Shown piece by piece: positions 24,177 to 61,534 of a DNA stretch of 64,000 bases (positions are counted from its first letter, which is position 1; each line of letters starts with the position of its first letter). A program made the translations under genes and the position numbers. Origin of the DNA: Piromyces finnis finn. Lineage: Eukaryota; Fungi; Neocallimastigomycota. The stretch lies in the NCBI GenBank assembly GCA_002104945.1, contig MCFH01000003.1, positions 62,001-126,000 of the forward strand, given 5' to 3'. The notes under the pieces were generated by a model, which made no database searches, was not told the DNA's origin, and worked only from the letters and a program-made list of their open reading frames with translations.

Positions 24177-24207
<31 letters not shown>

Positions 24208-33389: not shown

Positions 33390-33459
33390 TTTTTTTTTTT
33401 TTTTTTTTTTTAATTTTTAAATTAAGTTTTTTCCTAAGGTAGTTATGGTAAAAAACGCG

Positions 33460-33470
33460 GTAAAGATTAT
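33460..33470 (-). other. Self-priming PBS of K
   Basis: Minus-strand ATAATCTTTAC is complementary to the LTR at 33704-33714, 30 nt from a minus-strand TATAAATA (33745-33752). Confidence 0.8.
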
Positions 33471-34570
33471 TGTAAAAGTTTTACTAAACTTATAATTTAA
33501 TATTAAAATATTAAATTAAATAAAAGGTTAAAAGATAACTAGGTTAGAAAAAAAAATGTTTTATTAAAATAATCTTAATTGATTTATAAATGAATAATTA
33601 TATTATGTATTATAGTTAAAATAATTCCTTTTTATTTTATTTAAAGAATATATATAATAATAAGATTATTTAATAGTAATACTTATTAAGTATTAATAAG
33701 ATAATAATCTTTACAAAGATTTAATTCATAAAACTATTCTAAACTATTTATACTATTTGTAATTTTACATTTAATAATAAAATAACTTTTCAATACATGA
33801 TTATATTCATAATATATTTTATAATACTTAAACTAAACTTAAGACTTATTCCTAATTATTAAAAAATAACTATTGTTTATAATATTCATAATATTAATTA
33901 TTTCTTAATTATAATATAATTCATTGAATATAATATTAATAATTATAATCCTCTAGTTCAAAGATTATAAATTATGTTATTGAAATAATTATTATAAAAT
34001 AAAGTTAATTAGTTCCGGAAAATAATTTTAATTTAATTAAACAATAATTTTTATACTTTGAGTGAATGATTTATGTTTGATATATCAGGGGTGATCATTC
34101 TCTGAATAAACAATTAATCATTGCTAACAAAATATCTTTAAATTGGAATATCTCGTGAACCAGCAGAGATATTGACCTGATTTTTAGATATGTTGTTTGT
34201 CTCGAGCGTGGCTTTCTAACGAACGTAATTATAACCAAAACATTTTTATTCAAAAATCGTCATTCGTTGAGGAGATACGCGTGTTTTTTCTTATTCCATT
34301 TTAACGATAAGGGTTAAAGTTATTTATTATAAAAATTATTAAGGGTTAAGGTCATATTTTAACCTTTTCTAAATTTTTAAATATTTCTTAATAAAATTTT
34401 ATAATTTATTTGAAAATAAAATATTTGTTGATTTTGAATTTTCATAAGTGATTTCACAATTCCAAGTGATCTTGAAATTGTAATTTCACTAGTATTCGTG
34501 ACAATTAAATACATTATTCTATTAATACAATATTTTACACTACCAATCCGTTATCGAAAATGAAATAACT

Positions 34571-34642
34571 GGGGATATAACTCAGTGGTAGAGTGCTTGC
34601 TTTGCATGCAAGAAGCCTCGGGTTCGATCCCCGATATCTCCA
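34571..34642 (+). tRNA. tRNA-Ala (TGC)
   Basis: Cloverleaf with GGGGATA/TATCTCC acceptor and G3:U70 pair, CTTGC-TTTGCAT-GCAAG anticodon arm, GGTTCGATCC T-arm; T-runs downstream; no encoded CCA. Confidence 0.97.
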
Positions 34643-34906
34643 TATGATTTTACTTTTTATTAATAGTATATTTCTAAAGTTATTAAATTGGTAAAGAAAT
34701 TTTCGTTTTACTGTTTTATAATTTTTAATTAAACTTTTTTCATTAACAAAATATTTTCTGTATAATGTTCTTATTTACTTTAATAAAAACTTCTTTTCTA
34801 ATATTTTATATAAATTTTATTTCTACTTTGCAGCTAACAATATTAAATTATATATATCTTAATAATTTAAAATAATAATAAGAAAAATCTCTTACTATAA
34901 AATTAA

Positions 34907-34978
34907 TGCCTATTGACGGAATTGAACCACCGACCTTCGCTTTACAAGAGCGACGCTCTACCACTAAGCCAAACAGGC
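34907..34978 (-). tRNA. tRNA-Thr (TGT)
   Basis: Minus strand GCCTGTT...AATAGGCA, TCGCT-CTTGTAA-AGCGA anticodon arm, GGTTCAATTCC T-arm; T-runs downstream. Confidence 0.95.
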
Positions 34979-35818
34979 ATTACATTTTTTTTGTGTAAGA
35001 ATTAATAATTATTTATTGAATAATTATTAATTCTTATTTAATTATTTTTTTAATTATTAAATTAATTAATTATTTAAATTATTAGCATACATTCATTTAA
35101 ATTACTATAAACAGTTATTTATATTAATATTAATTATTCATTTACTAAATGTAAAATTTATTTAATTATTATATTAATTAATTATTTATTTAATTTAGTA
35201 ATTTATCTAAAATAATAGTAAACATTCATTTATTCTATTATTTAATAATTTTTGTATTACATTTTATAAGAAACATTATGTATTTTATTTTACGTTTGTA
35301 TTTTATATTTATGTATCGTATCTTGAAATAACTTATAGAAACAACTAGAAGATATAAATAAATATTAGGGCAATCGGATATTAAGGTTTTTCCGAATTTT
35401 ATTCGGTTTTACTTAATATTACGATGATTGATATATTAGTTATCAATCGAATATCTTTTTAGGTTTTTCTTCTAGTCTTTTCCTAAAAAGATTATTTGTT
35501 AAGATTAGAAATTTTTTATTAAACTTTAAATTATTAAAAAATTATAAATAAAAGAACTCTGGAATACCACTTAAAAATCCAGAGTTATTATTATAAGAAC
35601 TATTATAATAAATAACCTTTATTAAAACAATATTAATAAAATATTTTAAATTAATTAACATTAAAAGTTTTGTGTTGTTTATTATACTTCCTTATAATAA
35701 ACTCTTATTAAGATAAGTATAAAATTTTATTTTAACTTCTCAGTTTAATAATACTAATTATTATTAAATTGAAGATAATAATTATTATTATATAATACAT
35801 ATAATAATAATTATTACA

Positions 35819-35829
35819 ATAATAACTCT
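35819..35829 (+). other. Self-priming PBS of B
   Basis: ATAATAACTCT is complementary to AGAGTTATTAT (35581-35591), 30 nt downstream of TATAAATA (35543-35550). Confidence 0.82.
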
Positions 35830-36344
35830 CCTACATCAGATTGTTTAATAATTATTATTTTATTGGCATTAGAATTTCAATTCACAATATAAAATTTTGC
35901 AGAAAATAAATAAATACAATATATTAATAATTAATAATACATAAAAAAAAAAATTTACCAATAAGAAAAAAATATATATATTACCAATCAATATATAAAA
36001 AAAAAAAAAAAAAAAAATTTTTTTTTTTACCAATCAAATGTATAAAAAAAAAATTTTTTAAATTCTTTGCCAATTAATTAGATATTATTGAAATTATATA
36101 TAAAAAGTTAAATTTTCAAAAAAAAAAAAAAAAATTGATAATAATAGTAATAATAATAGATAACAATAATAACAATAACAAAAGATATATAAACTGTATT
36201 ATATTATAAAATATCAATATTTTCACAAATAAGATATACTACAATACTACAGTATTAGTAAAAAAAATATAATAATAATATCAATAAATAATATTTTATT
36301 CTACACTGATCTTATTTTATTTTTATAATTTAAAAATAGATAAT

Positions 36345-39300
36345 ATGGAATTCAATAGTAATAGTCAAGACATACAAGAAAATACTCCAAGGAGCGATAA
36401 GGCAACTGTTGAAACTTCCAAATTAATAGCTACCTTAACAGATATTCTACCAGCATTCCTCTCGCCTAATGGGATTCTTGCAAAAGAATCAGAAACTCAA
36501 GACGCGCCTAACTTATTGGAAATTATTGCTCAGAGTGAGGATTTCTTCGCAGAACATCCTAACTCTTTCTTGAGCGACGACAATAAGAGTTCCTTCATCA
36601 TAAACAAGTTACATGGAACCACAAGGAAATGGGGGCTATCTCTATTAGCCGATGGAACTCTGAAGAATCTAAGTTATGATAATTTTAAGGAACTACTTTT
36701 AAGGAACTTTGATGGAGGGGATAGCAGAAAAGAAAAATATGTTCTCATGGAAAAGCTATGGAAGTTAAAGCAGCAACAGTTGGGGAAAGTAACTGACTAC
36801 ACTATTGAATTCCGCCGCATCGCAAGTAGGATAGGATGGCAAGACGAAGTTTTCATTGATATTATTGGAAAGGGCCTACTAGATCGAGTCCGCGAAGAGT
36901 ATGACAAGATTGAAAAACCAAGAACCTTGTTTGAGGCTACCAATGCTATCATAGGTATCGATAGGAAATGCTACTTAGAAAGTTATATCAGACACAAACC
37001 AAGTAAAATTCATGGAAAACATCATAAATCTTTTGGAAGGAAAAAGCACGACTTAACTAAAGTTGAGAATAAGTTTACATCGTTCAACCAAAGAAAGGGC
37101 AAGACTAAGAGTGAAATTTTATCAGCAAATTACACTCCTAATAACAAAACCTCAATGACAACTGTTTTCACTATTCACATAAAGGGAAAAGTCATCAAAT
37201 GTAATTTTTTGATTGACTCAGGATCTGCGAAAAGCTTTATCTGCCGAACCTTTGCTACCAACAACAAATTACCAACTTCAGGTCTCACCTCTCCCATCAA
37301 TATTCAGCTTCCCAACAGTAAAAACATGACCATCAGACATGTTACTACCCCTTTGAAGCTCAAGTTAATGGATCATGTTGAGGATTACGAATTTTTTATT
37401 GGTAATCTTCAACTTCACGGCATCTGTGGAATTCTAGGAAGGGATTGGCTTGCAATTCATAATCCTTATATTAATTTTAAAACAAATAAAATATATTTCT
37501 TGGATTATTATTGCAAAGATCATTGTAAGTCTTGTAGAGGTAATAAATTTGTTTTTAAATCAAAAGATGTTACAGCTACAATGGTTTATAATGAAAACTG
37601 TATTAACGACTCTATTATCCCGGAGAATATCACAGAAGAAGAAATCCAAGACCACAACTACAACTGGTGCAACGCTATGATAGAGATGGGAACTATCATA
37701 GATGGGAAGGCTACCGAGGATGCAACCATCAGCAAAGCTCTAGCCAAAGAAGACATTATAAAGAAGTACTACTCTAATTTAATGAAGGTGTTCGAAAAGA
37801 CAGAAGCCGACAAACTTCCACCTCATCGAGTTTATGACATTTCGATTGACTTAATACCAAATAGTCAATTATACTTTGGTCCAATATATTCATTAACAGT
37901 TGTCGAGTTAGAAACCTTAAAAAAATATATTAATGAAAATCTTGAAAAGGGTTTCATTCGAAAGTCCAAGTCACCAGCCGGTGCTCCTGTCTTGTTCGTG
38001 AAAAAACATGACGGATCCCTTCGACTATGTGTAGACTACCGACGTTTGAACGCAGTTACCATCAGGAACAGCTACCCCCTTCCAAAGATTAATGATTTGA
38101 TTGAATCATTCAAAAGTGCTTCAATCTTTACTAGGCTCGATCTTAGATCAGCCTATAACTTGGTTCGTGTCAAGGAAGGCCATGAATATTTAACTGCTTT
38201 CCGAACTCCGCTTGGACATTATGAATATCTTGTAATGCCCTTCGGTCTTCGTAACGCACCTTCAGTCTTTCAAAGATTCATACAAGATGTGCTTACAGAT
38301 GTTATCGGTTCTTATGCTCAAGTCTATTTAGATGATATAATTATTTATTCAAAAAATATAGACGAACATATCAAGCATGTCAAGAAAATACTTCAACTCC
38401 TTATCGATAATGGCCTCTATGTGAAACTCGAAAAATGCGATTTTCACGTTAAGTCAACTACATTCTTAGGATTCAATGTCTCTCCAAATGGCCTTACAAT
38501 GGATCCTAACAAGGTGAAATCAATCTTGGATTGGCCAACGCCAAAAAACTTAAAAGAACTCCAGAGTTTTTTGGGTTTATGCAACTTTTACAGAAAGTTC
38601 ATAAAAAACTTTGCCGAAATAATGGAACCTCTTCGTAGACTACTAAAAGGTAACTCTGTTTTCAATTGGGATACTCAAGCTGAACGGTCCTTCAATCTAC
38701 TTAAACAGGCTTTTAAAAATGACGAATTACTTATCTTTCCAAATCCAGACAAAGAATTCGTAGTTGAATCAGACGCAAGTGACTTTGCGTTAGGATGCGT
38801 TCTCTCACAAATTAGCGATAAAGATAATATGTTACATCCTGTAGCATTTTACTCAAGATCTTTGAACAAAGCTGAAGCTAACTACACTATCTATGATAAG
38901 GAGCTTCTTGCTGTTATTACTGCCTTTGATGTATGGAGACATCATTTAGAAGGCGCAAAGTTCCCAATTCAAGTTATCACCGATCACAAAAATCTACTCT
39001 ATTGGAAAAAGCCTCAACGTCTTAATCAGAGACAAATCCGCTGGGGCATGTTCTTGTCAAAATTTGATTATAGAATTTCTTTCAGACCCGGTGCTAGAAG
39101 TGGGAAGCCTGACTCGCTCTCAAGAAGGCCAGATTACAAACCAAATGAATATAAATCTAATGAATATATCATTCCTGAAAAGAATATTTGCTGTGCCACA
39201 AGAGATAATATTAATAATCTTATTGAGTCACAGAGGTCTGATAAATATTGTAGAAACATCCTTTCCAAAATCAAATCAGGGACTGAAATAAAAAGTGCCT

Positions 39301-40430
39301 TGTTCAAAATCGTCGACGGTGTTCTCCATTTTCAAAACCGTATATTAGTGCCATCTGCGTTGAAAGGAAACATATTAAAATCCTTTCATGATACTCCTAC
39401 AAATGGTCACCAGGGTATTGACAAAACGCTTGAAAAACTTAAACGTTACTACTGGTGGCCTAATATGAAAAATGATGTTAGAAATTTTGTCCTTTCATGT
39501 AAAACTTGTGGAAAGAACAAAATAAGAAGACATAAACCATATGGTAAGATTCAACCTCTCCCTGTTCCTAACAAGCCATGGGAAATAATAGGTGTAGACT
39601 TCATTGTCTACCTTCCAAGCTCTCAGGACTGCTCTTGTATTATGGTTGTATCGGATCATTTTACTAAAATGGTTCATTTAATTCCCTGCTCCGACGTACC
39701 CTCTGCTGACCTAACAGCTAAACTTTTGTTATTCAATGTATTTCGCTACCATGGATTTCCTAAGGTAATAGTTTCGGATCACGGTACCCAGTTTTCCTCC
39801 GAATATTGGACTTCGCTTTGTTCGGCCTTGCATGTAAAGCCTCGACTTGCTACAGCTCACCATCAACAGTCAAATGGACAAGTCGAGAGAGCCAACTCAG
39901 TGATTGAACAATATCTTCGCTGTTACTGTTCTTCGGCACAACATGAATGGTTTTCTTATCTTCCCTTATGTGAGTTAGCTTATAACAATTCTCTTCACAA
40001 GTCTATAGGAATGTCGCCATTTTTCGCCAATTATGGGTTCCATCCGGAATGTAATATTGATTCTCCCCCGATTCTACTTAAGGATAACGCTTCATCTCTT
40101 ACTAGAGATTGGTCGTCCCATTTTAATGCCTTAAAAAAACAACTAAATCAAGCTAAAGAAGACTTCAAGAAGTATGGAGATAATCACAAATCCACGGGTC
40201 CAGAGCTTAAGGTCAATGATATGGTTTGGCTCAAGCGCCATTATTTTACTAATGAACCTGCTAAGAATCTAGCTTCTCAATATTTAGGACCATTCCGCAT
40301 TTCTGAAAAGAGGGAACGTATGAATTACAGGCTTGAATTACCAGAAAATCTTAACATTCATCCTGTATTTCATATTTCACAATTGGAACCTTATACGAGT
40401 AGAAATCCTGAACTAAAGGAACATTTATAA
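36345..40430 (+). CDS. gag-pol: Single Gag-Pol polyprotein of B
   Basis: 1361-aa intact ORF: FLIDSGS, YLDDI, VESDASDFALG, HHCC/DDE, GPF module. Confidence 0.96.
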   Translation: MEFNSNSQDIQENTPRSDKATVETSKLIATLTDILPAFLSPNGILAKESETQDAPNLLEIIAQSEDFFAEHPNSFLSDDNKSSFIINKLHGTTRKWGLSLLADGTLKNLSYDNFKELLLRNFDGGDSRKEKYVLMEKLWKLKQQQLGKVTDYTIEFRRIASRIGWQDEVFIDIIGKGLLDRVREEYDKIEKPRTLFEATNAIIGIDRKCYLESYIRHKPSKIHGKHHKSFGRKKHDLTKVENKFTSFNQRKGKTKSEILSANYTPNNKTSMTTVFTIHIKGKVIKCNFLIDSGSAKSFICRTFATNNKLPTSGLTSPINIQLPNSKNMTIRHVTTPLKLKLMDHVEDYEFFIGNLQLHGICGILGRDWLAIHNPYINFKTNKIYFLDYYCKDHCKSCRGNKFVFKSKDVTATMVYNENCINDSIIPENITEEEIQDHNYNWCNAMIEMGTIIDGKATEDATISKALAKEDIIKKYYSNLMKVFEKTEADKLPPHRVYDISIDLIPNSQLYFGPIYSLTVVELETLKKYINENLEKGFIRKSKSPAGAPVLFVKKHDGSLRLCVDYRRLNAVTIRNSYPLPKINDLIESFKSASIFTRLDLRSAYNLVRVKEGHEYLTAFRTPLGHYEYLVMPFGLRNAPSVFQRFIQDVLTDVIGSYAQVYLDDIIIYSKNIDEHIKHVKKILQLLIDNGLYVKLEKCDFHVKSTTFLGFNVSPNGLTMDPNKVKSILDWPTPKNLKELQSFLGLCNFYRKFIKNFAEIMEPLRRLLKGNSVFNWDTQAERSFNLLKQAFKNDELLIFPNPDKEFVVESDASDFALGCVLSQISDKDNMLHPVAFYSRSLNKAEANYTIYDKELLAVITAFDVWRHHLEGAKFPIQVITDHKNLLYWKKPQRLNQRQIRWGMFLSKFDYRISFRPGARSGKPDSLSRRPDYKPNEYKSNEYIIPEKNICCATRDNINNLIESQRSDKYCRNILSKIKSGTEIKSALFKIVDGVLHFQNRILVPSALKGNILKSFHDTPTNGHQGIDKTLEKLKRYYWWPNMKNDVRNFVLSCKTCGKNKIRRHKPYGKIQPLPVPNKPWEIIGVDFIVYLPSSQDCSCIMVVSDHFTKMVHLIPCSDVPSADLTAKLLLFNVFRYHGFPKVIVSDHGTQFSSEYWTSLCSALHVKPRLATAHHQQSNGQVERANSVIEQYLRCYCSSAQHEWFSYLPLCELAYNNSLHKSIGMSPFFANYGFHPECNIDSPPILLKDNASSLTRDWSSHFNALKKQLNQAKEDFKKYGDNHKSTGPELKVNDMVWLKRHYFTNEPAKNLASQYLGPFRISEKRERMNYRLELPENLNIHPVFHISQLEPYTSRNPELKEHL

Positions 40431-42132
40431 AGGGAGCAATGTAAGAATTAATAATTATTTATTGAATAATTATTAATTCTTATTTAATTATTTTTTTAAT
40501 TATTAAATTAATTAATTATTTAAATTATTAGCATACATTCATTTAAATTACTATAAACAGTTATTTATATTAATATTAATTATTCATTTACTAAATGTAA
40601 AATTTATTTAATTATTATATTAATTAATTATTTATTTAATTTAGTAATTTATCTAAAATAATAGTAAACATTCATTTATTCTATTATTTAATAATTTTTG
40701 TATTACATTTTATAAGAAACATTATGTATTTTATTTTACGTTTGTATTTTATATTTATGTATCGTATCTTGAAATAACTTATAGAAACAACTAGAAGATA
40801 TAAATAAATATTAGGGCAATCGGATATTAAGGTTTTTCCGAATTTTATTCGGTTTTACTTAATATTACGATGATTGATATATTAGTTATCAATCGAATAT
40901 CTTTTTAGGTTTTTCTTCTAGTCTTTTCCTAAAAAGATTATTTGTTAAGATTAGAAATTTTTTATTAAACTTTAAATTATTAAAAAATTATAAATAAAAG
41001 AACTCTGGAATACCACTTAAAAATCCAGAGTTATTATTATAAGAACTATTATAATAAATAACCTTTATTAAAACAATATTAATAAAATATTTTAAATTAA
41101 TTAACATTAAAAGTTTTGTGTTGTTTATTATACTTCCTTATAATAAACTCTTATTAAGATAAGTATAAAATTTTATTTTAACTTCTCAGTTTAATAATAC
41201 TAATTATTATTAAATTGAAGATAATAATTATTATTATATAATACATATAATAATAATTATTACATTTTGTTAAGGAATGAACATAAATAGTTGAATTAGC
41301 TAGAATTTTAGGAATTAACCTTCAACTATTTATATTCCTTACTAGTGTTTAACTCTATTTTTAAAATATAAAAATTATAATATATAATTTTTATACATTT
41401 TTCTAGTAATTATTCATATTTTTATTATATAGTTATATTATTTGTATATAGTTATTTAAGACCTTTATTATTAGTATTAGTATAATTACTTATAATATTT
41501 TATACTTATAAATTTTACAAAATTTTATTATTAAAATAGTTATAGGAATTTTATTATTATTTAAGGTTTATTTTATTAATTAACTTTATTGTATAATATT
41601 TTATAATTTGAAATTATGACATAGAATTTAATTATAATTTTTACTAAAAGAGGCAACTGTTACACACAAAACAGAAGATACCTCGACAGAAAAATTATTA
41701 TTTATGTCTAAAAAAGGGCATAATTAATTGAATAATATAATTTTATTATATGTCATAATTAAATATATAATATATGATATGCAAAAATGTTACACATATC
41801 ATAAATTAAAATTTTATTAATTATAAATTAAAAATTTTTCTATTCAAATATTAAGAGATTATTCATAATATATATTAAGGATTTAATTAATATATGTTAC
41901 AGTGAATGATCCATATATTATGAATGAAATCAATTTAAATCCTTAGCTATCCAAAACCATTAAATTTCAAATAATGGATAGTTGGAAAAAGTACGAGGAT
42001 TTTTGAGAAAATTTTTAAAAATTGAAAAATCAAAAATAAATTAAATGAATAAAAATTAAAATTAAATAAATTTTTATTTTTATAACTATTCAAGTGTTTT
42101 GTGATATCTTATTTGAACCGTAGCATAATTAA

Positions 42133-42151
42133 TGGTGGAGATATCGGGGAT
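42133..42151 (+). other. PBS of C, complementary to the tRNA-Ala(TGC) 3' end
   Basis: TGGTGGAGATATCGGGGAT is the exact reverse complement of 34627-34642 plus CCA. Confidence 0.95.
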
Positions 42152-42539
42152 AATAATAACATATTGATATCACACTACATTTTTATAGTTATTTTTATAT
42201 TTATTTTTGTATTATTATTTAATTAAAATAGTTAATAATTCAAAAGAGGGTTATACTAGTATAATAAAAAGTTATATACTTCAAGGCACAATTAAAATAG
42301 TTAATAGAGAGAAATTAATATTGTTAATTGGTGCAGTTAAGGAAGTATTTTATATTGGTATTACTAGTTTAACTAAAGAGAATAAGTATTAGTGTTGTTA
42401 ATTAAATATATTTCAAATATTGTTGTAATTCATTCTTTTAAATTCTTATAAAAGAAAATTATTTTTTTTAAACTTGTTTCATTCTTTAATATTATTGTAA
42501 AATTGTATTTTTATCTTTATTTAAAACTTGTATATAAAA

Positions 42540-43448
42540 ATGAGTACGGGAGCTGATAAATCTATTGACTTTGCTAAATTAATGAAGGAATTAAAGCATG
42601 TCACTAGATTAACCGAAGATAATTTGGACATTAAGACTTGGTATAGTCAATTAAAGTATTGGACTATGCTTCAAGATGCTAAAAGTCCAAAAATGGTGTT
42701 TCTAGCTTGTTTGTTTACTACTACAGGAACACCAAATGAACTTATTCAAGAGTTGAATCCTAATAAGGACTTTGAAAGTGATGAAGACAGTGAAGATAGT
42801 GATGAAGAAGATGAAGGTAGAGGAAAGAGAAGAGCTCACTACCCTTCCCTTAAAAAGATAGTCACTATGTTAGAAGAATTTTATGGAGTAAAGGAAGATC
42901 AAATAGAACTTCTCAAGGAGCTTAGGGATATGCGAATCAAAAAGAATGAAAAAGTAAAAGACTTCAACATAAGGTACCGTTCCTTGTATGTCAAACTAGA
43001 CAAGAAGCGTAGAAGGAAAGTAGATGTTGAAGATTACTTAGATTCCATTGAGCCTAACTATAAAGCCTGGGAAAATGTGCGTAGGGAAAAAGAAGTTACC
43101 TTAGCAGAAGCCTACAAGCTTGCCGAAGATGGGGATAGACTAAATTTAAGAAATCGTCATAAAGCTAACAATTATGATGTATCCACCTCTTCTAACTCTG
43201 ATAAAAGATATAAAAATAAATATGAAAGAAAAGAAGATAGCTATGAAAGGAACAAGAAGCCAACAATAGCGAATTATGGTAATGATAAGAAAGATCCTAT
43301 GAATGAGTTGACGGAGAAAATGAGAAACTTAACTATCAAAACTTGCTACTTTTGCAACGAGAAGGGACACTTTCAATATCATTGTCCTAAACTGAGTGCC
43401 ATAGTAGAAGAAAACAAACAAAAGGCCAGAAAAGGTCATTTAAATTAG
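42540..43448 (+). CDS. gag: Gag of C
   Basis: ORF with CYFCNEKGHFQYHC zinc knuckle; first ATG at 42540 (ORF track starts at TTG 42528). Confidence 0.9.
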   Translation: MSTGADKSIDFAKLMKELKHVTRLTEDNLDIKTWYSQLKYWTMLQDAKSPKMVFLACLFTTTGTPNELIQELNPNKDFESDEDSEDSDEEDEGRGKRRAHYPSLKKIVTMLEEFYGVKEDQIELLKELRDMRIKKNEKVKDFNIRYRSLYVKLDKKRRRKVDVEDYLDSIEPNYKAWENVRREKEVTLAEAYKLAEDGDRLNLRNRHKANNYDVSTSSNSDKRYKNKYERKEDSYERNKKPTIANYGNDKKDPMNELTEKMRNLTIKTCYFCNEKGHFQYHCPKLSAIVEENKQKARKGHLN

Positions 43449-46400: not shown

Positions 46401-47416
46401 ACGTAGGTCATGAAGGTTATTATAAGACTTATCAAAGGTTAAAGAAAAATTATTATTGGAATGATATGATAGCGGATATTAAAAGAATTATTAGCAAGTG
46501 TGAGAAGTGTCAAGTAAATAGACCACAACCTTATCCAGAACCAACTGAGGACAAAGCTACTAAAGTGGAAGGACCATTTGTACATCTAGGTTTGGATATT
46601 ATTGGGCCATTACCTAAGACAAGAAATAGTAAACAATATATAATAGTCATAGTTGACTATTTTACTAAATGGGTAGAAGCCGAAGCGGTGGAAACTGTTA
46701 CTTCTCTGGACGTGATAAAGTTTTTAATAAATGTGTTTGCAAGACATGGGGTACCACAAGTTATTACTACAGATAATGGAACTCAATTTACCTCAGATAT
46801 GACAAAGATATTTCTAGACCTATATGACGTATATGTGAAGTTCACAGTTCCCTACCACCCTGAAAGTAATGGATTAACAGAAAACCGAAATAAGGAAATT
46901 GGGAAACTTTTAAGACTTTTAGGGAAAGAAAGTAAAGACTGGGATGAAGTTCTACCTTCCGCGCTTTGGGCCTTAAGAACTACAAAGAATACGGCTACGA
47001 AACATTCAAGTTTTGAGCTAGTTTATGGTAGGGAAGACCAACAACCTTTTGATATAGCTGCCCGACCCACTAAAGATCAAAACAAGAGTTCCGATGAAAT
47101 TCTTTTGGAAAAGTTTATAAATCACTACCGATGGACCCTAGAAGCTGCTGAAAATGTAAAGACGGCTAATAAATATTGGTCTATGAGAAGAGAAGAAAAA
47201 TTAAGTATGAACCAAGCTAAGAAAATAAAAGTAGGTGACCTAGTTTTGGTAAGAAACTTCAGTAGAACAAAATTGGAACCTTACTTTGTAGGACCTCTCA
47301 AAGTGGTCCAGAAACAGTTCAATACAGTAGTCTTAGCAGACCCAGAAACTGGAGTACTAATGAACAGAAATGTACATTTCAAAAATGTCGTTAAATATAA
47401 CTCAGCAACGGAGTAG
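43439..47416 (+). CDS. pol: Pol of C via -1 frameshift (ORF track 43898-47416)
   Basis: -1 frame is open from TTTAAAT (43439-43445); LLVDTCS protease-like, FIDDV RT, IRTDASYEGVG RNase H, HHCC/DDE integrase, PYFVGP. Confidence 0.92.
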   Translation, partial: FKLDSGRRSTPSNPKIASLNNSSVDNNEYSEYSEYSDLSDNEEISSIEDKIIAAAKRKANDEEDSSKKRVQKSLKEDPRPIVTPATRKQQERELSNESLESGSPSQPKNQLDTSVLSQPNINKEKEKSKRLREKQRSKPPTPINKDEREENEDMEVSIDTEDKVEVEKAKKKNTDILPTLLKMTKDKEKDKTKEEKVTRNIQMRGDTSDYDIFEDLNTAKCDITYGQLFNVCPKIRTQLSQGLKLEKVQSKVSGALNNIVATTTLLNNINHDYISKNNEASEEDIAMVDATVDGIPGKLLVDTCSNLNVITSSFYKRLPKEYEVVGISKGRIRLATTDEEYSEGTVVRIPVRIGEVELVVDFRILEKEEPFYDMLINYKTQVDNLLYINPVTKSLCQVKERGVVEEIVPINNQYYNEGKLVCTIKKIPDGDTKSLKSIEGLPPQEYIHNEIFLNTLPKDKRKEILRLLEENLEIIATSSEELTPSKLSPHKINLKAGVKPVKQRAYRLTKFKSDILKEELTKLIEKKLIEPSYSEWSSPVVLVPKHNGKWRMCVDYRRVNDLTEKDSYSLPYIDEIFDSLNGAKIFTTMDLYSGYHQISMHEESTEVTSFTTKFGNYQFKVMPFGLTNAPATFQREMNKILFPLIGNCVYNFIDDVLIYSKSVEEHMEHIKRVFEILKENELKINLEKCSFMKEEVNVLGHRLSTKGLSPLESKIEAIRKWEAPGNIHELRSFLGAVGYYRNFIPNYSQVTAPLCELLKKNVRYKWEEKHEKAFKVLKEKLINAPILKFPEFDKPFIIRTDASYEGVGGVLLQEDETNKIEHPVHYISRSLSKAEKNYGITELEGAALFFCVSKLKPYILGNPYTTMVYTDHKPLLGLFKNKEPNSARHNRWCLTVSQLDIDIQYDKGKNNVIADALSRMKNKEEKKILVTKINKTNNEELLTKVIKEFIAEKFTTIDGKDYFVDGNNLRQLISTVEEKVKLIFQAHNVGHEGYYKTYQRLKKNYYWNDMIADIKRIISKCEKCQVNRPQPYPEPTEDKATKVEGPFVHLGLDIIGPLPKTRNSKQYIIVIVDYFTKWVEAEAVETVTSLDVIKFLINVFARHGVPQVITTDNGTQFTSDMTKIFLDLYDVYVKFTVPYHPESNGLTENRNKEIGKLLRLLGKESKDWDEVLPSALWALRTTKNTATKHSSFELVYGREDQQPFDIAARPTKDQNKSSDEILLEKFINHYRWTLEAAENVKTANKYWSMRREEKLSMNQAKKIKVGDLVLVRNFSRTKLEPYFVGPLKVVQKQFNTVVLADPETGVLMNRNVHFKNVVKYNSATE

Positions 47417-48302
47417 CTTGAGTTTTAACGAAGGGCATTCTGTTAAGGAATGAACATAAATAGTTGAATTAGCTAGAATTTTAGGAATTAACCTTCAACT
47501 ATTTATATTCCTTACTAGTGTTTAACTCTATTTTTAAAATATAAAAATTATAATATATAATTTTTATACATTTTTCTAGTAATTATTCATATTTTTATTA
47601 TATAGTTATATTATTTGTATATAGTTATTTAAGACCTTTATTATTAGTATTAGTATAATTACTTATAATATTTTATACTTATAAATTTTACAAAATTTTA
47701 TTATTAAAATAGTTATAGGAATTTTATTATTATTTAAGGTTTATTTTATTAATTAACTTTATTGTATAATATTTTATAATTTGAAATTATGACATAGAAT
47801 TTAATTATAATTTTTACTAAAAGAGGCAACTGTTACACACAAAACAGAAGATACCTCGACAGAAAAATTATTATTTATGTCTAAAAAAGGGCATAATTAA
47901 TTGAATAATATAATTTTATTATATGTCATAATTAAATATATAATATATGATATGCAAAAATGTTACACATATCATAAATTAAAATTTTATTAATTATAAA
48001 TTAAAAATTTTTCTATTCAAATATTAAGAGATTATTCATAATATATATTAAGGATTTAATTAATATATGTTACAGTGAATGATCCATATATTATGAATGA
48101 AATCAATTTAAATCCTTAGCTATCCAAAACCATTAAATTTCAAATAATGGATAGTTGGAAAAAGTACGAGGATTTTTGAGAAAATTTTTAAAAATTGAAA
48201 AATCAAAAATAAATTAAATGAATAAAAATTAAAATTAAATAAATTTTTATTTTTATAACTATTCAAGTGTTTTGTGATATCTTATTTGAACCGTAGCATT
48301 TT

Positions 48303-48934
48303 TGATAAATAATAATTATAAATATATTATAAATTTGATATTTGTAGAACGTTTTATTATAAAAATAATTATTAAATAATTTTATATAGTTTAGCATAAA
48401 AATATAATTTACATAAAATCAAATATTTTATAAATTTATATATTTGATTGGGTTAAATTATAAAAATAATTTTTAATATAAAGAATAATAATAATTTTTA
48501 GTAGAAAATGGGAAGACTTAACATATTAATAAGAAGTTGAATTTTTAATAATAGTTAATATAGTTAGTTAAATAATACATAATAATAATTAAAAGACAAA
48601 AATAAGTTTTTATATAATAAAAATTATTGTTAAAAAAGAGTATAAAAACAATAAATAAAAGAAAATATAAAAACGAAATTAAACTTGTCTAGTTTGTAAT
48701 TATTGTGTTAATAATAAATAATATTTTATAGAATAAATCTGGTGTTATTATTCTATATAAATATTATTAAATAATAAAACTATAAATATTATAAAATATT
48801 ATAAAATAAATTAAAATAAATAATAAAACAAGTAGATATTGTTAAAGCTCGTACAATAGCTGTCGAGATAAAACAATATAAAGTAACGAATAAGTAGTTT
48901 AAAAAGTTGTAATATAACTACCAATCCGTTATCA
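48303..48934. repeat. Intact D-family solo LTR (632 bp)
   Basis: TGATAA...TTATCA termini; T-tract on both sides; homologous to D1 and D2. Confidence 0.88.
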
Positions 48935-48940
48935 TTTTTG

Positions 48941-50544
48941 TGTAATAATTATTTGTAAAATATTCTAAACTAAGTTCAGGTTTGTATACACTCAATATTC
49001 TAAACTACACTTTAAATTATTTTTAATTTTTTATATTTTATTTATTAAATTATTTTAAAATAACTAAACTAAAACAACCGTTGATTACTTTACCGTGAAG
49101 GATATTTTACCAGAGCCCTCACTAGGTAATCAATATTTATTATTAAAAAAAAAAAAAAACAACTAAACTAATTATAAACTAATGTTAATTTATCTAAACA
49201 AAATTAACCTATACGATTTTCCAACTATCGTTTCAATAGTTGAAAAATTTTCTTTATTTATACTTTTTAAATAAATTGAATAAATTCTAATATACATGTT
49301 TTAATATTATAATTTTACATTGTTTACATTTATACATTTATTAAAAGAAATTATTTGTATTAAACTATTTAAATTCAATTTATTTACTACAGAATTTTCT
49401 AAACTTAAAATAAAGTTTTGATTTATTTACTATATGGTTGATTATATTTCAAACATATATTCAATTTATTTATTTCTAATTTTGAGGCTTAGTTTATAAA
49501 AAAAATTTTTTATTATCTAAAATATTTATTGGTTAAAATTTATTTAATTTAAAATTTTATTTTATCATCAAAAACTTTATCTTATCATAAAATTAAATTT
49601 TACATAAATTTATGTTAATGTATTGTGATATGAATTTTATGGAAATTTACGGTACATTAATTTAATACATTATACATTATTTTAAATACGTATTAAATAC
49701 ATTATTCTATTAATACAATATTTTACATTATTATTATATATATTATATAATAATAATTATTATCTTCAATTTAATAATAATTAGTATTATTAAACTGAGA
49801 AGTTAAAATAAAATTTTATACTTATCTTAATAAGAGTTTATTATAAGGAAGTATAATAAACAACACAAAACTTTTAATGTTAATTAATTTAAAATATTTT
49901 ATTAATATTGTTTTAATAAAGGTTATTTATTATAATAGTTCTTATAATAATAACTCTGGATTTTTAAGTGGTATTCCAGAGTTCTTTTATTTATAATTTT
50001 TTAATAATTTAAAGTTTAATAAAAAATTTCTAATCTTAACAAATAATCTTTTTAGGAAAAGACTAGAAGAAAAACCTAAAAAGATATTCGATTGATAACT
50101 AATATATCAATCATCGTAATATTAAGTAAAACCGAATAAAATTCGGAAAAACCTTAATATCCGATTGTCCTAATATTTATTTATATCTTCTAGTTGTTTC
50201 TATAAGTTATTTCAAGATACGATACATAAATATAAAATACAAACGTAAAATAAAATACATAATGTTTCTTATAAAATGTAATACAAAAATTATTAAATAA
50301 TAGAATAAATGAATGTTTACTATTATTTTAGATAAATTACTAAATTAAATAAATAATTAATTAATATAATAATTAAATAAATTTTACATTTAGTAAATGA
50401 ATAATTAATATTAATATAAATAACTGTTTATAGTAATTTAAATGAATGTATGCTAATAATTTAAATAATTAATTAATTTAATAATTAAAAAAATAATTAA
50501 ATAAGAATTAATAATTATTCAATAAATAATTATTAATTCTTACA
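48941..50544 (-). repeat. B-family solo LTR E (inverted relative to B), split by I3
   Basis: 48941-48953 plus 49733-50544 equals the reverse complement of the B LTR; TSD TTTTG. Confidence 0.9.
48954..49727. repeat. I-family solo LTR I3 (774 bp)
   Basis: 11-bp perfect terminal inverted repeat TGTAAAATATT/AATATTTTACA; TSD TTATT. Confidence 0.9.
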
Positions 50545-51314
50545 TTTTGATACAAGATGCATAGAAAAATATAATATTTTAAATATTTTATGAATAATAT
50601 CTAATCCTTTTATAAATTGTATATCAATTACTAATGATAATAATAATTAAACTATATTAGTATAAATTATTATGACGCAAATGTTACACATACATTAGAA
50701 TAATTAGTTACACAAGAAAGGAAAAGATATAAAAGAGAGTGTTAAAGCAGAAGATATCAAGAGAGAGAACTTTTCATTTATAAATAATATTTGATATTTT
50801 AGTTTTAAGTATTAGTTTTATTTTATTTTATTTTTATATTAATAGTTTTCGTTTAAGTTAGTTTTAGGTTAATAATTACGTATTTAGTATTTATTATATT
50901 TCCTTCAGTTTAAATATTAGTTATAAAAGAAAAGAATATTTATTGTTTATTTTTACTATTTCAGAAAAGTTATATTTTATCATTAATAATACTTTCATCA
51001 ACATATTTTTATATTTACACATTATATTTAACTATTTATATTTATTCAATAATAACTTTCGATCCTATTAGTATTGAATGTTATTAATGTTATAATCATA
51101 ATAATAATAATAATTAAATAAAGAATCTTTAAACCAAAATCTATTTAATTATATTATTATAAAATTTATTATTTTTATTATTTATTTTTATTATTATAAA
51201 ATAGAAATAAATACAATATTAACTAATATATTATTCATATATCATTCCCTATTGCTAACGTTCATAATTATATTTTATTTATGGTGTTTTTGAAATATAT
51301 TGCATCATAAAATT

Positions 51315-51331
51315 TGGTGGAGAATCCGGGC
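51315..51331 (+). other. PBS of F, probably for another tRNA-Ala isoacceptor
   Basis: TGGTGGAGAATCCGGGC is complementary to ...GCCCGGATTCTCCA-CCA; 7-nt offset from the LTR as in C. Confidence 0.7.
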
Positions 51332-51566
51332 GTAGCAATATTGAATAATATGAAACATTAATAGTATTATTTCTATTCTAATTATATTTATTTTTTTTTA
51401 TTATTATTATTTTTAATTAAAATAAGTTCTTTTATATAAATAAAACTTTCTACTATAAAACTATTAAATATACACAAATATTATATATATATATATAAAA
51501 TTATTATAACAATAATATATAAGAAGTTATTATATAAATTTATTTTAAAATAAATAAATAATTAAA

Positions 51567-53024
51567 ATGGTTGACGCCACTAAAGTAAAAAGAGACCTTC
51601 CATACCTCTGCGATTATGGAAAGGATATTGATTCCTGGATGGAGGATTTTATAAGTGTCATGGAGATCCATGATATACAAGAGCCCTCTAGAATATTTGT
51701 GTGGTTAAAAGTTGCCGTTGAAGCAGATATCAAGAATGTTTTGAAATCTTTATGTACCTCTCATAATAATGTTAAAAGGTATCCTACTTATAAAGAGGTA
51801 CAATCTGCTATTGAAGATTATCTGGAAATAAAGCCAGGGGATAAATGTTCAGTATTAAAAACATTAAAAATTAAACAAAACGAAACTATAAAAAGCTTCA
51901 ACTATAAATACTTAACTCTTTACCACCGCTTGGAAAGAGATTTTATGAAAATTATTTCTGTGGATGACTATTTAAACTCTATTAAGAAAAGAGTTTATCC
52001 ACACTCCCAAGTTATATTAGCCGAATGTGAAACATTATCTGAAGCTTTTAAAGTTGCTGAAAAGGCTGAGAAAGCCGAAAGAAGAACCATAGAAAGTACT
52101 GAAACTAACAATATTTCTATGGTATACCAAAATACAAAAAATACTCGAAATGTTTTGTTAGACCATCCGTTATATAGAGGATTAGTAGATGATGATAATG
52201 TTAATATTAACCATAGCAATTTTAATAACTCTTATTCAAATTATGTACAAGAAAAGCCTATCGGAAGATCCTATCCAGGTATCCCAAGAAATTATGAAAA
52301 TGTGTATTTTAATAATAGTAACTTCCGGAGTATCAGATGTTACTATTGCAAGCAAATGGGACATAAAGCTAGTGAATGCCCAAATAAAAGAGAAAGAAAT
52401 AATTTCAATAATTTCAATAATTTTAATCAATTTAATAATCAAAGAAATTCTTATAACAGATATGGAAATTTATATAATAATAATGATAACAATAATTACA
52501 ACAATAATAGTTATTTAAATGGATTTAATACTAATACTAATAACAACAACCAAAAGGATAATAGAAACATTAATGAAAATAATTATATGGATTATCATCA
52601 TAAAAATAACTATAATAATATGAATAACAATTATTATATGTACACCAATAATGATTATAAGAAAGGTAATTTTAATCCAAATGGAAATTACAATTATAAT
52701 GAAAGTAATAATATTAATAGCTACAATAATTATAATAATACTATTGGATATAATGGATATAATAATAATGGTTTTAATAGTTATAATAAAAACAACACAA
52801 TGAATAATAATACATTTAATAACGTCAGTAATGTTAATAAGAATAATATGAGGAACAACATTAATGATAGTGATAACAGGAACAATATTAATAATAATTA
52901 CCCTAATCAATTAAATAATCAATATTATAATAATTATTATAATAAGACCTTACCAGAAAATAATTACAATAAAGCAACCAAAATAAATTTAAACAATCCA
53001 TCTGAATCAAATAATTTAAACTAG
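51567..53024 (+). CDS. gag: Gag of F with Asn-rich C-terminus
   Basis: Similar to C Gag (YP(T/S).K...LE, IK.NE..K.FN..Y..LY..L); CYYCKQMGHKASEC knuckle. Confidence 0.9.
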   Translation: MVDATKVKRDLPYLCDYGKDIDSWMEDFISVMEIHDIQEPSRIFVWLKVAVEADIKNVLKSLCTSHNNVKRYPTYKEVQSAIEDYLEIKPGDKCSVLKTLKIKQNETIKSFNYKYLTLYHRLERDFMKIISVDDYLNSIKKRVYPHSQVILAECETLSEAFKVAEKAEKAERRTIESTETNNISMVYQNTKNTRNVLLDHPLYRGLVDDDNVNINHSNFNNSYSNYVQEKPIGRSYPGIPRNYENVYFNNSNFRSIRCYYCKQMGHKASECPNKRERNNFNNFNNFNQFNNQRNSYNRYGNLYNNNDNNNYNNNSYLNGFNTNTNNNNQKDNRNINENNYMDYHHKNNYNNMNNNYYMYTNNDYKKGNFNPNGNYNYNESNNINSYNNYNNTIGYNGYNNNGFNSYNKNNTMNNNTFNNVSNVNKNNMRNNINDSDNRNNINNNYPNQLNNQYYNNYYNKTLPENNYNKATKINLNNPSESNNLN

Positions 53025-53272
53025 TTTATGGGAGAAGGACAACTCCCAGTAATCAAACCAAGTTTGGCAATTCTTTTGATTCAAATGATGAAATAAATGA
53101 AAATATTATGTATGTTCATAATAATAATAATGAACTAAATGGGAATAATTATTTCTATGATAGTCATAATGTTAATTTTAACAACAATCCTAATACTAAT
53201 TTTATTTATAATGATACTAATAATAATAATAATAACAATTCTTATGATATTAATAATAATAATAATAATGAA

Positions 53273-53336
<64 letters not shown>

Positions 53337-54940
53337 TAAATGAAAAATATGATAGCAGAAAAATCAATAATATAAAGGATATAATGGAAGAAAATATAAT
53401 TAAAAATAAGAAAGAAGAATGTTCATTATTTATAAATGATAATACAGCAAATAATAATAATATAAATAATGATTTATTTAATAATACTAATATTCCAGAT
53501 AATAAACTTGGAAAAAATTATGTTAATAATTATAATATTAATTATGATAAAAATAACAAACTGAATGATATGATATTAATTGGAAATTATAATGAAAATT
53601 GTAAAACAGATTTTGATTATATAAATAATGGAAATGATAATAATATAGAAAGTGATAATAATAGTGATATTTGTAAAGACAATAATAATGTTATGATAAA
53701 TATTAATGAGAATAACAACAAAAGAAATATGAATGATAATTATCTATATTCAAATACGAATAATAATAGAAATATGCTAAACAATTTTATTGAAGATTTT
53801 ATAACTAAAAGATTTGTATACATTGATGGAGTTCAATATTATAAACAAAATGATTTATTAAGAAAAGTTATTACAAATAGTGATGAAAAATGGAAACTAA
53901 TTAATGAAGCTCACTCTATTGGTCATGAAGGAACATACAAGACATATCACAGACTAAGAAGAGATTATTTTTGGAAAGGTATGACAAAGGATATTAAATT
54001 ATTTATTAAATGTTGTCATAAATGTCAAACACGTAAACCGCAACCAACTAATATGTATCCGGAAGATTTAGCAACTCCTCCTGGTTTACCATTTAGTAGA
54101 GTTGGTTTAGATTTAATAGGTCCGTTATATACCACTGCTAGAGGAAATAAATATATAATCGTATTGGTAGATTATTTAACCAAATGGGTGGAAGCAGAAC
54201 CTTTAATGAAAACGGAATCTGAGGATGTAATAAGATTCCTTACTAATGTATTTTCAAGACATGGTATACCAGAAGTATTAATTACAGATAATAGACCACA
54301 ATTCATATCTGATATAACAAAAGCTTTTCTAGATTTACATGATGTATATGTTCATTATATTAGTACCTATCATCCAGCCTCAAATGGAGAAGTTGAAAAT
54401 AGAAATAGAGAAATATCAAAATACTTACGATTATTAGGAAAGAAAAATAAAGATTGGGATGAAACACTACCTAGTGCATTATGGGCCCTTAGAACTGCAA
54501 AAAACGAAGTTACAAAATTTAGTAGTTTTGAACTCCTATACGGAAGAAGAGACCTCCAACCATTTGAACTTAGTATCAATGTTGATAAAAGGTTAAAAGA
54601 AGAAAATGAAGAAGAATATTATATTAGGAAATTTATAAATCATAACCAATGGATTAAAGAAGCAATAAATAATATTGAAACAGCTAATGAGCTATGGAAA
54701 GATAGAAGAAGACAAATCAAAAGACTACGTAGTGAATTTAAGCCTGGTGATTTAGTTCTAATTAGAAATTTTAATAGAAGAAAATTAGATCCTTATTATC
54801 TTGGACCTCTAAAAATTGTAAAACAACAACTTAATACTGTAACAGTATGCGATCCAATTACAAATGATATTGCAGAAAGAAATATTCATTTAAAGAATGT
54901 AATTCCCTATATTAGTAGTTTTATTGAAATGAAACATTAA
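53015..54940 (+). CDS. -1 frame ORF of F: poly-Asn linker plus complete integrase (ORF track 53108-54940)
   Basis: HSIGHEG...CHKC zinc finger, GLDLIGPL, LITDNRPQF, SNGEVENRN and PYYLGP align to the C integrase. Confidence 0.9.
53273..53335 (+). repeat. (AAT)n microsatellite encoding poly-Asn
   Basis: About 21 consecutive AAT units. Confidence 0.9.
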
Positions 54941-56433
54941 TGAAAAATACGACGACTTCAAGGGACGAAGTCTTATTTAAAGTGGGGGCCTCCTGATACA
55001 AGATGCATAGAAAAATATAATATTTTAAATATTTTATGAATAATATCTAATCCTTTTATAAATTGTATATCAATTACTAATGATAATAATAATTAAACTA
55101 TATTAGTATAAATTATTATGACGCAAATGTTACACATACATTAGAATAATTAGTTACACAAGAAAGGAAAAGATATAAAAGAGAGTGTTAAAGCAGAAGA
55201 TATCAAGAGAGAGAACTTTTCATTTATAAATAATATTTGATATTTTAGTTTTAAGTATTAGTTTTATTTTATTTTATTTTTATATTAATAGTTTTCGTTT
55301 AAGTTAGTTTTAGGTTAATAATTACGTATTTAGTATTTATTATATTTCCTTCAGTTTAAAATATTAGTTATAAAAGAAAAGAATATTTATTGTTTATTTT
55401 TACTATTTCAGAAAAGTTATATTTTATCATTAATAATACTTTCATCAACATATTTTTATATTTACACATTATATTTAACTATTTATATTTATTCAATAAT
55501 AACTTTCGATCCTATTAGTATTGAATGTTATTAATGTTATAATCATAATAATAATAATAATTAAATAAAGAATCTTTAAACCAAAATCTATTTAATTATA
55601 TTATTATAAAATTTATTATTTTTATTATTTATTTTTATTATTATAAAATAGAAATAAATACAATATTAACTAATATATTATTCATATATCATTCCCTATT
55701 GCTAACGTTCATAATTATATTTTATTTATGGTGTTTTTGAAATATATTGCATCATTTTTGGTAACGGATTGGTGTAAAATATTGTATTAGTTGTAAAGTC
55801 AGACACTAAACCGAATAGATTAGGATATCTAACCTATTACAATAACACAAAAATTTGAGAAATAAAATAAAAAATTGTTTTATAAAATATCTTTTATTAT
55901 AATAGAATTTTAATAATAACAATTACATCGATAAAATGATGAAAAATATCTTCTATTTATATTTTTCCTAAATACATTTATATTATATTATAACTATTTA
56001 TTTCTTATATATTATTATTTAAAATCTACACTAAAATCTTAATTATTAATAAATATTTAAACTATAACTATTTTTAGTAAAATACAATTGGCAATTCAAA
56101 TTAAGTACTATTTAATTTGAATATGTGCCCATGTATTATTGATATATTAATCATTTATTATTTATCTATTTCTATAAAAAAACAATACTAAAACTAGGGA
56201 TTTAAATTGAGAATATTAATTTACTTGTTAAACATTAAAAATAAATTAATAATTTATTTTGTTTTAAACTTTAATTATTAATAAATAAATTATGTCTCAT
56301 TTTCTTTTTCTGAATATAATTTGTGTAACTTAAACAATAATACTTGTGGCTTAAGTTACATTAAAGATATCAAACAGAGGCGTTTGATGTCTTTACAATC
56401 TCTCTCTCTAAGTCGAGCTCCTGCGAGATTAAT

Positions 56434-61038: not shown

Positions 61039-61111
61039 CTCTAATACAAAAACACATAAAATTAAAATTAAGTAAAATAACGAGGGTTTCTTACTATTAT
61101 TTCAAGTAAGT

Positions 61112-61149
<38 letters not shown>

Positions 61150-61534
61150 TAAAATTTTCGTCTTCTAACAATAAGTTAATAAGTTATTACAGACTCTCTC
61201 TGTATAATTACAGTGTCGAACAAGTTATTAACTAATGTTAATTCCAAACTTCAGCCGTAGTAATAGTCTTTTTCAAATACGAATTATTCGGTGAAGCGTT
61301 CCGATTGATTAAAGTATTCTTGTAGTCCGGTAGAATATCCCAAAGTTCTTGATAATCTTCCTTAGGTAGCCTTAGCAAAATATTCAAAAATTTCTTCTAT
61401 TTCTTCAAGTAGAGTTTTCCAAAAAGTTCTTATATTTCTTCTAGTAGAATTCTTCTATTTGTCCTAGTAGAATCTTCCCAAAAGTTCTTCTATTTCTTCT
61501 TGATACCCTAACGTATTCGTAACTATCTGTTTAG

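Follow-up and report, generated by a model that had tools for sequence, protein, structure and literature searches.

Integration aimed at genes that RNA polymerase III (Pol III) transcribes is the textbook case of a mobile element picking a safe site, and to our knowledge detailed accounts of it are confined to ascomycete yeasts and Dictyostelium. In the anaerobic fungus Piromyces finnis, one stretch of 64,000 nucleotides (nt) (GenBank assembly GCA_002104945.1, contig MCFH01000003.1, positions 62,001 to 126,000, here G000:C156:62001-126000; referred to below as the window) carries an island of one tRNA-Ala and one tRNA-Thr gene, on both sides of which long terminal repeat (LTR) retrotransposons are joined end to end. 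How did these elements come to be joined at one place, and did the two tRNA genes direct them there? An initial annotation proposed that successive elements had inserted beside the tRNA genes, each pushing the older copies outward. We find it very probable that the region is a pair of insertion stacks produced by Pol III-gene-directed integration. The assembly has 232 contigs that total 56,455,805 bases. Its A+T content is about 80%, and G+C content along the window runs from 15 to 37%.

The two genes, tRNA-Ala(tgc) at 34570-34643 on the forward strand (true 5' end probably 34571) and tRNA-Thr(tgt) at 34906-34979 on the reverse strand (Rfam tRNA model 68.5 bits, G000:C156:96907-96978), are the only tRNA genes called by ARAGORN in the window. 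They stand tail to tail, so that both upstream sides point outward, tRNA-Ala anchoring the left arm and tRNA-Thr the right. The native 5' flank of tRNA-Thr occupies 34980-34993, and its last 5 nt, TTTTG, are the left target-site duplication of element B (34994-41264, forward strand), a full-length Ty3/gypsy element with a gag-pol open reading frame (ORF) at 36345-40430 and two LTRs of 825 nt each (34994-35818 and 40440-41264). B starts 14-15 nt from the 5' end of tRNA-Thr, in agreement with the 15 nt given by the initial annotation. Outward from B lie C (41268-48298, forward strand), a full-length element of a second Ty3/gypsy clade with LTRs of 858 nt and ORFs at 42528-43448 and 43898-47416; Da (48303-48934, forward strand), a solo LTR of 632 nt with duplication TTTTT and its 5' end toward the tRNA gene; E (48941-48953 and 49727-50544, reverse strand), a solo LTR of the B family that is 99.8% identical to the B LTR and is split by Db (48954-49726, forward strand), itself a solo LTR, 773 nt long, which entered E 13 nt from its end and has duplication TTATT; and F (50548-55754, forward strand), an internally deleted element of the C clade, 5.2 kb long. 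D and E had at first been described as single units, but a query with 48303-49726 matched two LTR families, of 632 and about 775 nt, each with its own full-length pairs. Likewise, what had been treated as one family (D, D1 and D2) is a mixture of Da, Db and D2-type LTRs, and these differ in their distances from tRNA genes.

The strings of nucleotides between these elements were read at each junction and are those originally described: TTT between B and C (41265-41267), TTTT plus the first T of Da between C and Da (48299-48303), TTTTTG between Da and E (48935-48940), TTT between E and F (50545-50547), and TTTTT between F and the next LTR (55755-55759). LTR ends of the form TG...CA and duplications of 5 nt were found in B, C, F, G and D2 (G and D2 are described below). 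In three cases the duplication is completed by the first bases of the next element, as had been claimed. The TTTTG of B is present at 34989-34993 and again at 41265-41269, where the second copy borrows the TG of C; the TTTTT of C borrows the first T of Da; and the TTTTG of E borrows the TG of F. A duplication that holds the first bases of a neighbour requires that the neighbour was already present, and therefore B was inserted after C, C after Da, and E after F. Db entered about 27 nt from the tRNA gene while E was innermost. With the outer elements described below, the Thr arm holds at least 10 targeted insertions, which from oldest to youngest are Da2; Db4, X and G; and then F, E, Db, Da, C and B, so that the stack does record insertion order, with older copies displaced outward and B the youngest on this arm.

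Differences between the two LTRs of each element were compared as a second source of order. There are none in B, C, D2 and two copia elements, one indel in F, one mismatch in G, and 3 mismatches plus 3 gaps in A. Divergence was rejected as a clock, as 0-1 differences have no power to order or date B, C and F; it does not contradict the stack order and has no power to show that B is youngest. Because LTR-pair divergence cannot date the copies, the insertion order rests on the overlapping duplications.

Is the position beside tRNA genes peculiar to this locus? For the tRNA side we took the 62 best-scoring tRNA genes with 400 nt on either side, chosen without regard to their flanks, many of them being the second gene of a Glu-Arg or Gly-Thr pair; Rfam scoring covered 63 of about 2900 tRNA candidates, and the listing of B-box pattern matches covered 100 of 741. 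Merging of duplicated loci left 42 unique upstream contexts and 38 downstream flanks. For the element side, the 30 best copies of the C LTR, corresponding to about 21 elements, were examined with flanks of 1.5 kb. Comparison of upstream regions with the LTR library by BLAST with short words was noisy, and long, end-anchored matches alone were used. Eleven of the approximately 21 C elements adjoin a tRNA gene and lie 13-16 nt from its 5' end. The genes concerned represent 9 amino-acid identities (Thr, Ser, Cys, Trp, Arg, Glu, Gly and Ala, with a Met gene behind one Ser unit). In all 11 cases the LTR turns its TG (5') end toward the gene, and where the copy is full-length this LTR is the 5' one. 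The other C copies border on LTRs from families B, Da, F, G or D2 across junctions of 3-6 nt, and therefore stacks exist elsewhere in the genome.

Seen from the tRNA genes, a repeat boundary that recurs in at least 3 independent copies falls at -10 to -19 in 24 of the 42 units, and the ...CA terminus of a recognisable family is present in about 35 of the 42, while 7 appear empty. When the 38 downstream flanks were put to the same test, the single match was a poly-T artefact, and a true LTR boundary was seen once, at +85; downstream targeting was looked for in these 38 flanks and none was seen. Innermost families include C and C-like elements, F, Da (by either end), B-like (by either end), A-like, and at least 6 more; the Da family is also innermost at other tRNA genes, and in both orientations. 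These counts support the conclusion that several Ty3/gypsy lineages are directed just upstream of tRNA genes, in a pattern far beyond chance, and bear out the enrichment at tRNA genes elsewhere that the stack had suggested.

The lineages do not, however, share a single site as had been proposed, for tRNA-directed insertion takes place at three separate distances: -12 to -19 for B, C, F and Da, -25 to -30 for Db, and -62 to -67 for X and D2. In the upstream sample, the boundaries of X and D2-type LTRs form a second concentration, at -64 to -68. To measure the distances genome-wide, an LTR end and a B-box were combined into one search pattern, and the same pattern written backwards served as the control. 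The end of X gave 24 matches and the control none, and in 21 of these the gap was 114-120 nt out of an allowed 100-130; the B-box starts 52 nt into the gene, and this spacing therefore places the LTR end 62-67 nt upstream. D2-type ends, of which there are 238 in the genome, gave 43 matches (control 0), mostly with gaps of 114-118 nt. Db ends gave 11 (control 0), and at 8 tRNA loci they lie 25-30 nt from the gene, with none at 13-17 nt. B-type ends gave 12 (control 1) at 14-19 nt from the gene, of which 4 turn the 5' end to it and 6 the 3' end. B and Da do insert in both orientations, as had been claimed. A single orientation, with the 5' LTR toward the tRNA gene and transcription away from it, is found for C (12 of 12) and for F (3 of 3).

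Within the window the remnants left by each insertion add up to the same distances. For the intermediate class, Db lies 13 nt inside E, itself 14 nt from the gene (13+14=27), and the corresponding sums are 17+14=31 for Db2 and 14+~13=27 for Db4. For the distant class, they are 38+14+13=65 for X in Db4, 39+12+13=64 for X in Da3, and 36+17+14=67 for D2. A remnant of about 50 nt of the innermost LTR always separates the end of X or D2 from the gene, and these remnants come from at least 10 LTR families; the target is therefore set by distance to the gene and not by sequence. At one further locus (L087, G000:C184:47048-47921) a Db-type LTR at -28 of a tRNA-Arg gene lies inside the preceding tRNA-Glu gene. 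Most of that gene, in a Glu-Arg pair, has been removed by the insertion, which shows that targeted insertion can destroy a paired tRNA gene.

These distances bear directly on a simpler explanation, in which the elements prefer a sequence, either T or A tracts or the TG and CA ends of resident LTRs, and the tRNA genes are coincidental. Runs of T or A are indeed found at the junctions, nearly all F copies have the ends of other LTRs 3-5 nt away on both sides, and there are head-to-head LTR ends 3 nt apart with no tRNA gene in the flanks examined. Tracts of T, however, are ubiquitous at about 80% A+T, and yet about half of the C elements (11 of about 21) sit in a 4-nt window beside varied tRNA genes. 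X and D2 cut about 50 nt into at least 10 unrelated LTR ends, always 62-67 nt from the gene, and, with Db, keep their distances whatever the sequence, even within tRNA-Glu, so that insertion into any T tract, the alternative that had been raised at the outset, does not describe them. The T and A runs themselves are native tRNA flank copied by successive duplications, and the 5' end of F is innermost at tRNA-Gly. We consider a sequence preference highly improbable.

The left arm of the island follows the same rules but has been rearranged. The end that lies 14 nt before tRNA-Ala had been assigned to D2; it is instead the last 17 nt of a Da-type LTR, Da3 (34540-34556, forward strand). Inside Da3 is Db2 (beginning at 26049, with its last 36 nt at 34504-34539, forward strand), which ends 30-31 nt from tRNA-Ala and has duplication CTACC at 26044-26048 and 34540-34544. 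Nested in Db2 is D2 (26826-34503, reverse strand), a full-length element with duplication ATTAA, the LTR end of which is 66-67 nt from tRNA-Ala. Further out, a piece of Da3 (26010-26048) stands directly after an X LTR (X-left, 24882-26009, forward strand), while the body of Da3 is found at the far right of the window (63304-63877, reverse strand), where it follows a second X LTR of about 1130 nt (X-right, 62174-63303, reverse strand), a family that inserts at about -65.

X-left and X-right are in opposite orientation and differ by 3 mismatches and 2 gaps. X-left is flanked by TATTT and TAACA, and X-right, when reversed, by TAACA and TATTT. Duplications that are reciprocally swapped in this manner imply that recombination between the inverted repeats flipped the 36 kb at 26010-62173, and the inversion noticed at the outset is thus accounted for by recombination of the two opposed X LTRs. 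The inner parts of each arm remain with their own tRNA gene and the outer parts have been exchanged. The outer stack of the Thr arm now lies on the left at 10524-24881 (forward strand), where it comprises the body of Da2 (10524-10641 and 23568-24067), a copia insertion, and the 5' part of Db4 (24068-24881). The inversion has parted these from the last 14 nt of Da2 (55760-55773, reverse strand) and the 3' part of Db4 (55774-55791 and 62152-62173, reverse strand), which carries the nested full-length element G (55792-62151, duplication TTAGT). When the inversion is undone, Db4 (24068-24881, X, 62173-62152, 55791-55774) sits in Da2 with duplication CCAAT and Db2 sits in Da3 with duplication CTACC, and the duplications TTATT, CCAAT, CTACC, ATTAA, TATTT and TAACA all close. 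The order of insertion on the Ala arm is Da3, X, Db2, D2.

Closure of these duplications also bears on whether the stack could be, wholly or in part, an artefact of a repeat-rich long-read assembly, with LTRs collapsed or joined into chimeras. The same loci are repeated on small contigs, the flanks of the island are present in runs of the source sample only, and among the short-read pieces listed none spans a junction with at least 31 nt on each side. Misassembly would nevertheless have to produce matching duplications for every element, also across the inversion, and to repeat the geometry at dozens of independent loci that differ in both tRNA gene and junction sequence; moreover, a short-read contig of 65 nt covers 34955-35019 with no difference. 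We regard an artefact as extremely unlikely. In three other runs, two from coded organisms and one from a pig gut metagenome, both tRNA genes were found alone, with divergence beginning immediately outside them.

Random insertion followed by survival only in harmless places, beside tRNA genes and inside old elements, would also concentrate elements here. Genes are scarce and dead mobile elements abound in the window and on many small contigs, and not everything there keeps a fixed distance: a copia element (10642-23567, duplication AAATC) lies inside Da2, a second copia (14285-21210, duplication CAGTA) lies inside the first, and these two, together with the chromodomain-bearing G, cluster in the stack without one. 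The copia elements lie within a Da LTR and keep no set distance from any tRNA gene, and therefore do not share the targeting. On the other hand, windows of 4-7 nt at three distances, together with orientations that are specific to families, are beyond what selection could produce, and identical LTRs mean that the copies are very young, which leaves little time for selection. Survival bias of this kind is, in our judgement, very unlikely to account for the stacks.

We therefore return to directed integration, and to the proteins that could carry it out. A, B, C, D2 and G encode, between their LTRs, domains in the Pfam order protease, reverse transcriptase, RNase H, integrase that is characteristic of gypsy elements, and the best match of the B and C polyproteins among solved structures is Ty3 Gag-Pol (for B, 7q5b, E 1e-141). 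The lineages had been called unrelated; they fall instead into two deep Ty3/gypsy clades, A/B/D2/G and C/F, with about 31% amino-acid identity between them, whereas within clades the pol proteins of A, B, D2 and G are 44-68% identical and C and F are 53% identical in the integrase. F keeps gag (with a zinc knuckle) and integrase and is without protease, reverse transcriptase and RNase H; LTR pairs of its family elsewhere are 7.8-10.5 kb apart. Because its LTRs differ by a single indel even though it is internally deleted, F may have moved in trans.

The priming modes given for A, B and C in the initial annotation proved sound, since complementary stretches were found for each. B and A have the sites expected of Tf1-type self-priming, in which 11 nt after the 5' LTR of B are complementary to LTR position 588 and 12 nt in A to position 391. 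The primer-binding site of C (42133-42151) instead matches tRNA-Ala(tgc), with complementarity over 19 nt to its 3' end and the CCA. The gene for the tRNA matched by this site is the very one in the island, and at another locus (L029) the C family is also inserted upstream of tRNA-Ala(tgc). At the C-terminus of the integrase, G has a chromodomain (PF00385, 27.1 bits against a cut-off of 25.1). D2 has a tail of 75 residues that aligns with the chromodomain region of G and has no Pfam match. A and B end 11-15 residues past the SH3-like domain, and C is without a Pfam chromodomain match.

By analogy with Ty3, the integrases of several of these lineages would be tethered to the transcription complex on the tRNA gene and would cut a fixed distance upstream, whatever sequence is there. 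Insertions at -12 to -19 would fall beside the presumed Pol III start, which would fit the downstream edge of TFIIIB, and those at -62 to -67 just past its upstream edge. The gene would stay a target after each hit, because its promoter lies inside the gene. Each new copy would then land between the gene and the earlier copies, or tens of nucleotides into the innermost LTR, and the earlier copies would be moved outward; the later recombination of the opposed X LTRs would have exchanged the outer parts of the arms. We infer that the tether is to TFIIIB or TFIIIC and that a protein surface fixes each distance. Rather more tentatively, and with somewhat less than even confidence, we suggest that three mechanistically distinct integrase dockings, at the start site, at about -27 and at about -65, evolved among related integrases, the last perhaps with the help of a chromodomain-like tail put to a new use, namely recognition of the first nucleosome or of the complex at its upstream edge. 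Were this the case, the targeting of Pol III genes would either date far back in fungi or have been invented repeatedly, and the stacks would be a base-exact, ordered fossil record of bursts of mobile elements.

Several observations weigh against directed integration as set out here. F is not innermost at any of the 30 sampled copies of its LTR and is innermost only at 3 independent tRNA-Gly units; a tRNA gene within 20 nt of an F LTR was found at 0 of the 30 loci, nearly every F copy being buried between the ...CA end and the TG... start of other LTRs. (The F loci were themselves tried as evidence against targeting and set aside, their flanks being other LTR ends and F being innermost at tRNA-Gly.) G has no fixed distance. 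The position at the start site is for this fungus an analogy, as the distances run to the mature 5' end, and -25 to -30 falls inside the yeast TFIIIB footprint, which a simple tether to TFIIIB fails to explain. The tRNA sample represents few isoacceptors and includes duplicated loci on small contigs, and a single assembly supplies all of the data. Finally, an empty site in other strains or species was sought in public runs and none was found.

The closest known system is Ty3 of Saccharomyces cerevisiae (Metaviridae), which integrates 1-4 nt from Pol III start sites through contacts between integrase and TFIIIB (PMC5911963). Ty3 and the elements described here have in common the order of protein domains, a narrow window upstream of tRNA genes of any identity, duplications of 5 nt and, for B and Da, insertion in either orientation. 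The Piromyces elements differ in that they belong to a different phylum, in that there are many active-looking families instead of one, in that about four-fifths of the sampled tRNA units are occupied and stacks reach a depth of at least 10, in the single orientation of C and F, and in the additional distances of about -27 and -65; contact with TFIIIB is here putative. Tj1 of Schizosaccharomyces japonicus, also of the Ty3/gypsy group, lands 5-11 nt upstream of where the mature tRNA begins and keeps a fixed orientation (PMC4600332), for which it had been termed unique. C and F share with it the narrow upstream window and the fixed orientation, but theirs is the opposite one, divergent from the gene, and the distances here are a few nucleotides larger.

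In Dictyostelium, where the genome is also very AT-rich and several gypsy families occur at tRNA genes, DGLT-A inserts 13-33 nt upstream in either orientation and Skipper-2, with a diverged chromodomain, targets the downstream side (PMC5006619, PMC5911963). The 25-30 nt of Db lie within the range of DGLT-A, although the windows here are separate and narrow instead of one broad window, and downstream targeting like that of Skipper-2 was not seen in our 38 flanks. The pair Skipper-1 and Skipper-2 (PMC5006619) resembles G, with its canonical chromodomain and no fixed distance, and D2, with its diverged tail and fixed distance, a likeness which we offer only as a lead. The non-LTR element TRE5-A inserts 40-54 nt upstream of tRNA genes via TFIIIB (PMC5911963) and is similar in idea to X and D2 in its fixed, far-upstream distance, but it is a LINE-type (long interspersed element) retrotransposon with a different integration chemistry, whereas X and D2 belong to the LTR elements and insert farther from the gene.

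A 2018 review of tRNA-directed gypsy elements names Ty3, Ty3p, Tj1, Tca8, Tyl3, Ylt1, Tyl6, DGLT-A and Skipper-2, the hosts of which are ascomycete yeasts or Dictyostelium only. For Neocallimastigomycota, Piromyces or anaerobic fungi, no paper that connects retrotransposons with tRNA genes turned up in the literature searched, which is no proof of absence. The stacks represent a Ty3-like system that has additional insertion distances and comes from a fungal phylum new to such systems. It stands apart in that its host is an anaerobic fungus of chytrid grade, in that the majority of the sampled tRNA genes are occupied, in that at least a dozen LTR families use the site, and in its three exact distances and, in some families, strict orientation. 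It offers natural material for the study of how integrases read TFIIIB and TFIIIC, of whether the trait is ancestral to fungi, and of how tRNA genes function while their whole upstream region is repeatedly replaced. Overlapping duplications give insertion order without a molecular clock and are useful for reconstructing bursts of elements. In the assembly, tRNA genes mark repeat-rich regions, and recombination between stacked LTRs reshapes such regions, as in the 36-kb inversion.

Other features of the genome touch on the same subjects. Many tRNA genes are arranged in fixed same-strand pairs (Glu-Arg, Gly-Thr, and Ser-Met in L014) with 7-10 nt between the members. LTR ends are found upstream of the first member only, which suggests that each pair is one transcription unit. 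At two loci (L062, G000:C205:35500-35800, and L064, G000:C192:160300-160600) a tRNA-like sequence lies about 20 nt before a B copy, and that of L064 includes the B-box-like GGTTCGATTC; ARAGORN and Rfam call no tRNA before the B copies at either locus, and what remains there may be tRNA genes in decay. The palindromic B-box GGTTCGAACCC is part of a GC-rich, gene-like sequence present in multiple copies (at G000:C15:41084, C46:55301, C128:15114, C176:262942, C187:51834 and C227:40359). This sequence has Db, D2-type and B-type ends upstream of it, and it may be another Pol III gene, or a target that is SINE-like (resembling a short interspersed element) or a mimic of tRNA.

D2-type LTR ends also occur at exact spacings, at C135:110930-115091 and C13:1063166-1065387 and on C47, C74 and C79. 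On C135 there are five such ends 1037 nt apart, the innermost at -65 from a tRNA gene, and C47, C74 and C79 carry long arrays with a period of 2785 nt. The arrays look like same-family stacks built at -65, or like tandem amplification of a unit of LTR plus tRNA gene. At the left edge of the window, a piece of a D2-type LTR at 1-645 is the reverse complement of 8024-8668 with 99.7% identity, and the flanks of element A (650-6098) do not match each other, the left one being AAAA and the right one TTTTT; within 1-9060 a second inversion between LTRs is likely. Beside it, at 9043-9112, the end of a D2-type LTR is followed by a B-like remnant of 50 nt and then by CAATAAAA, which is the -65 geometry again.

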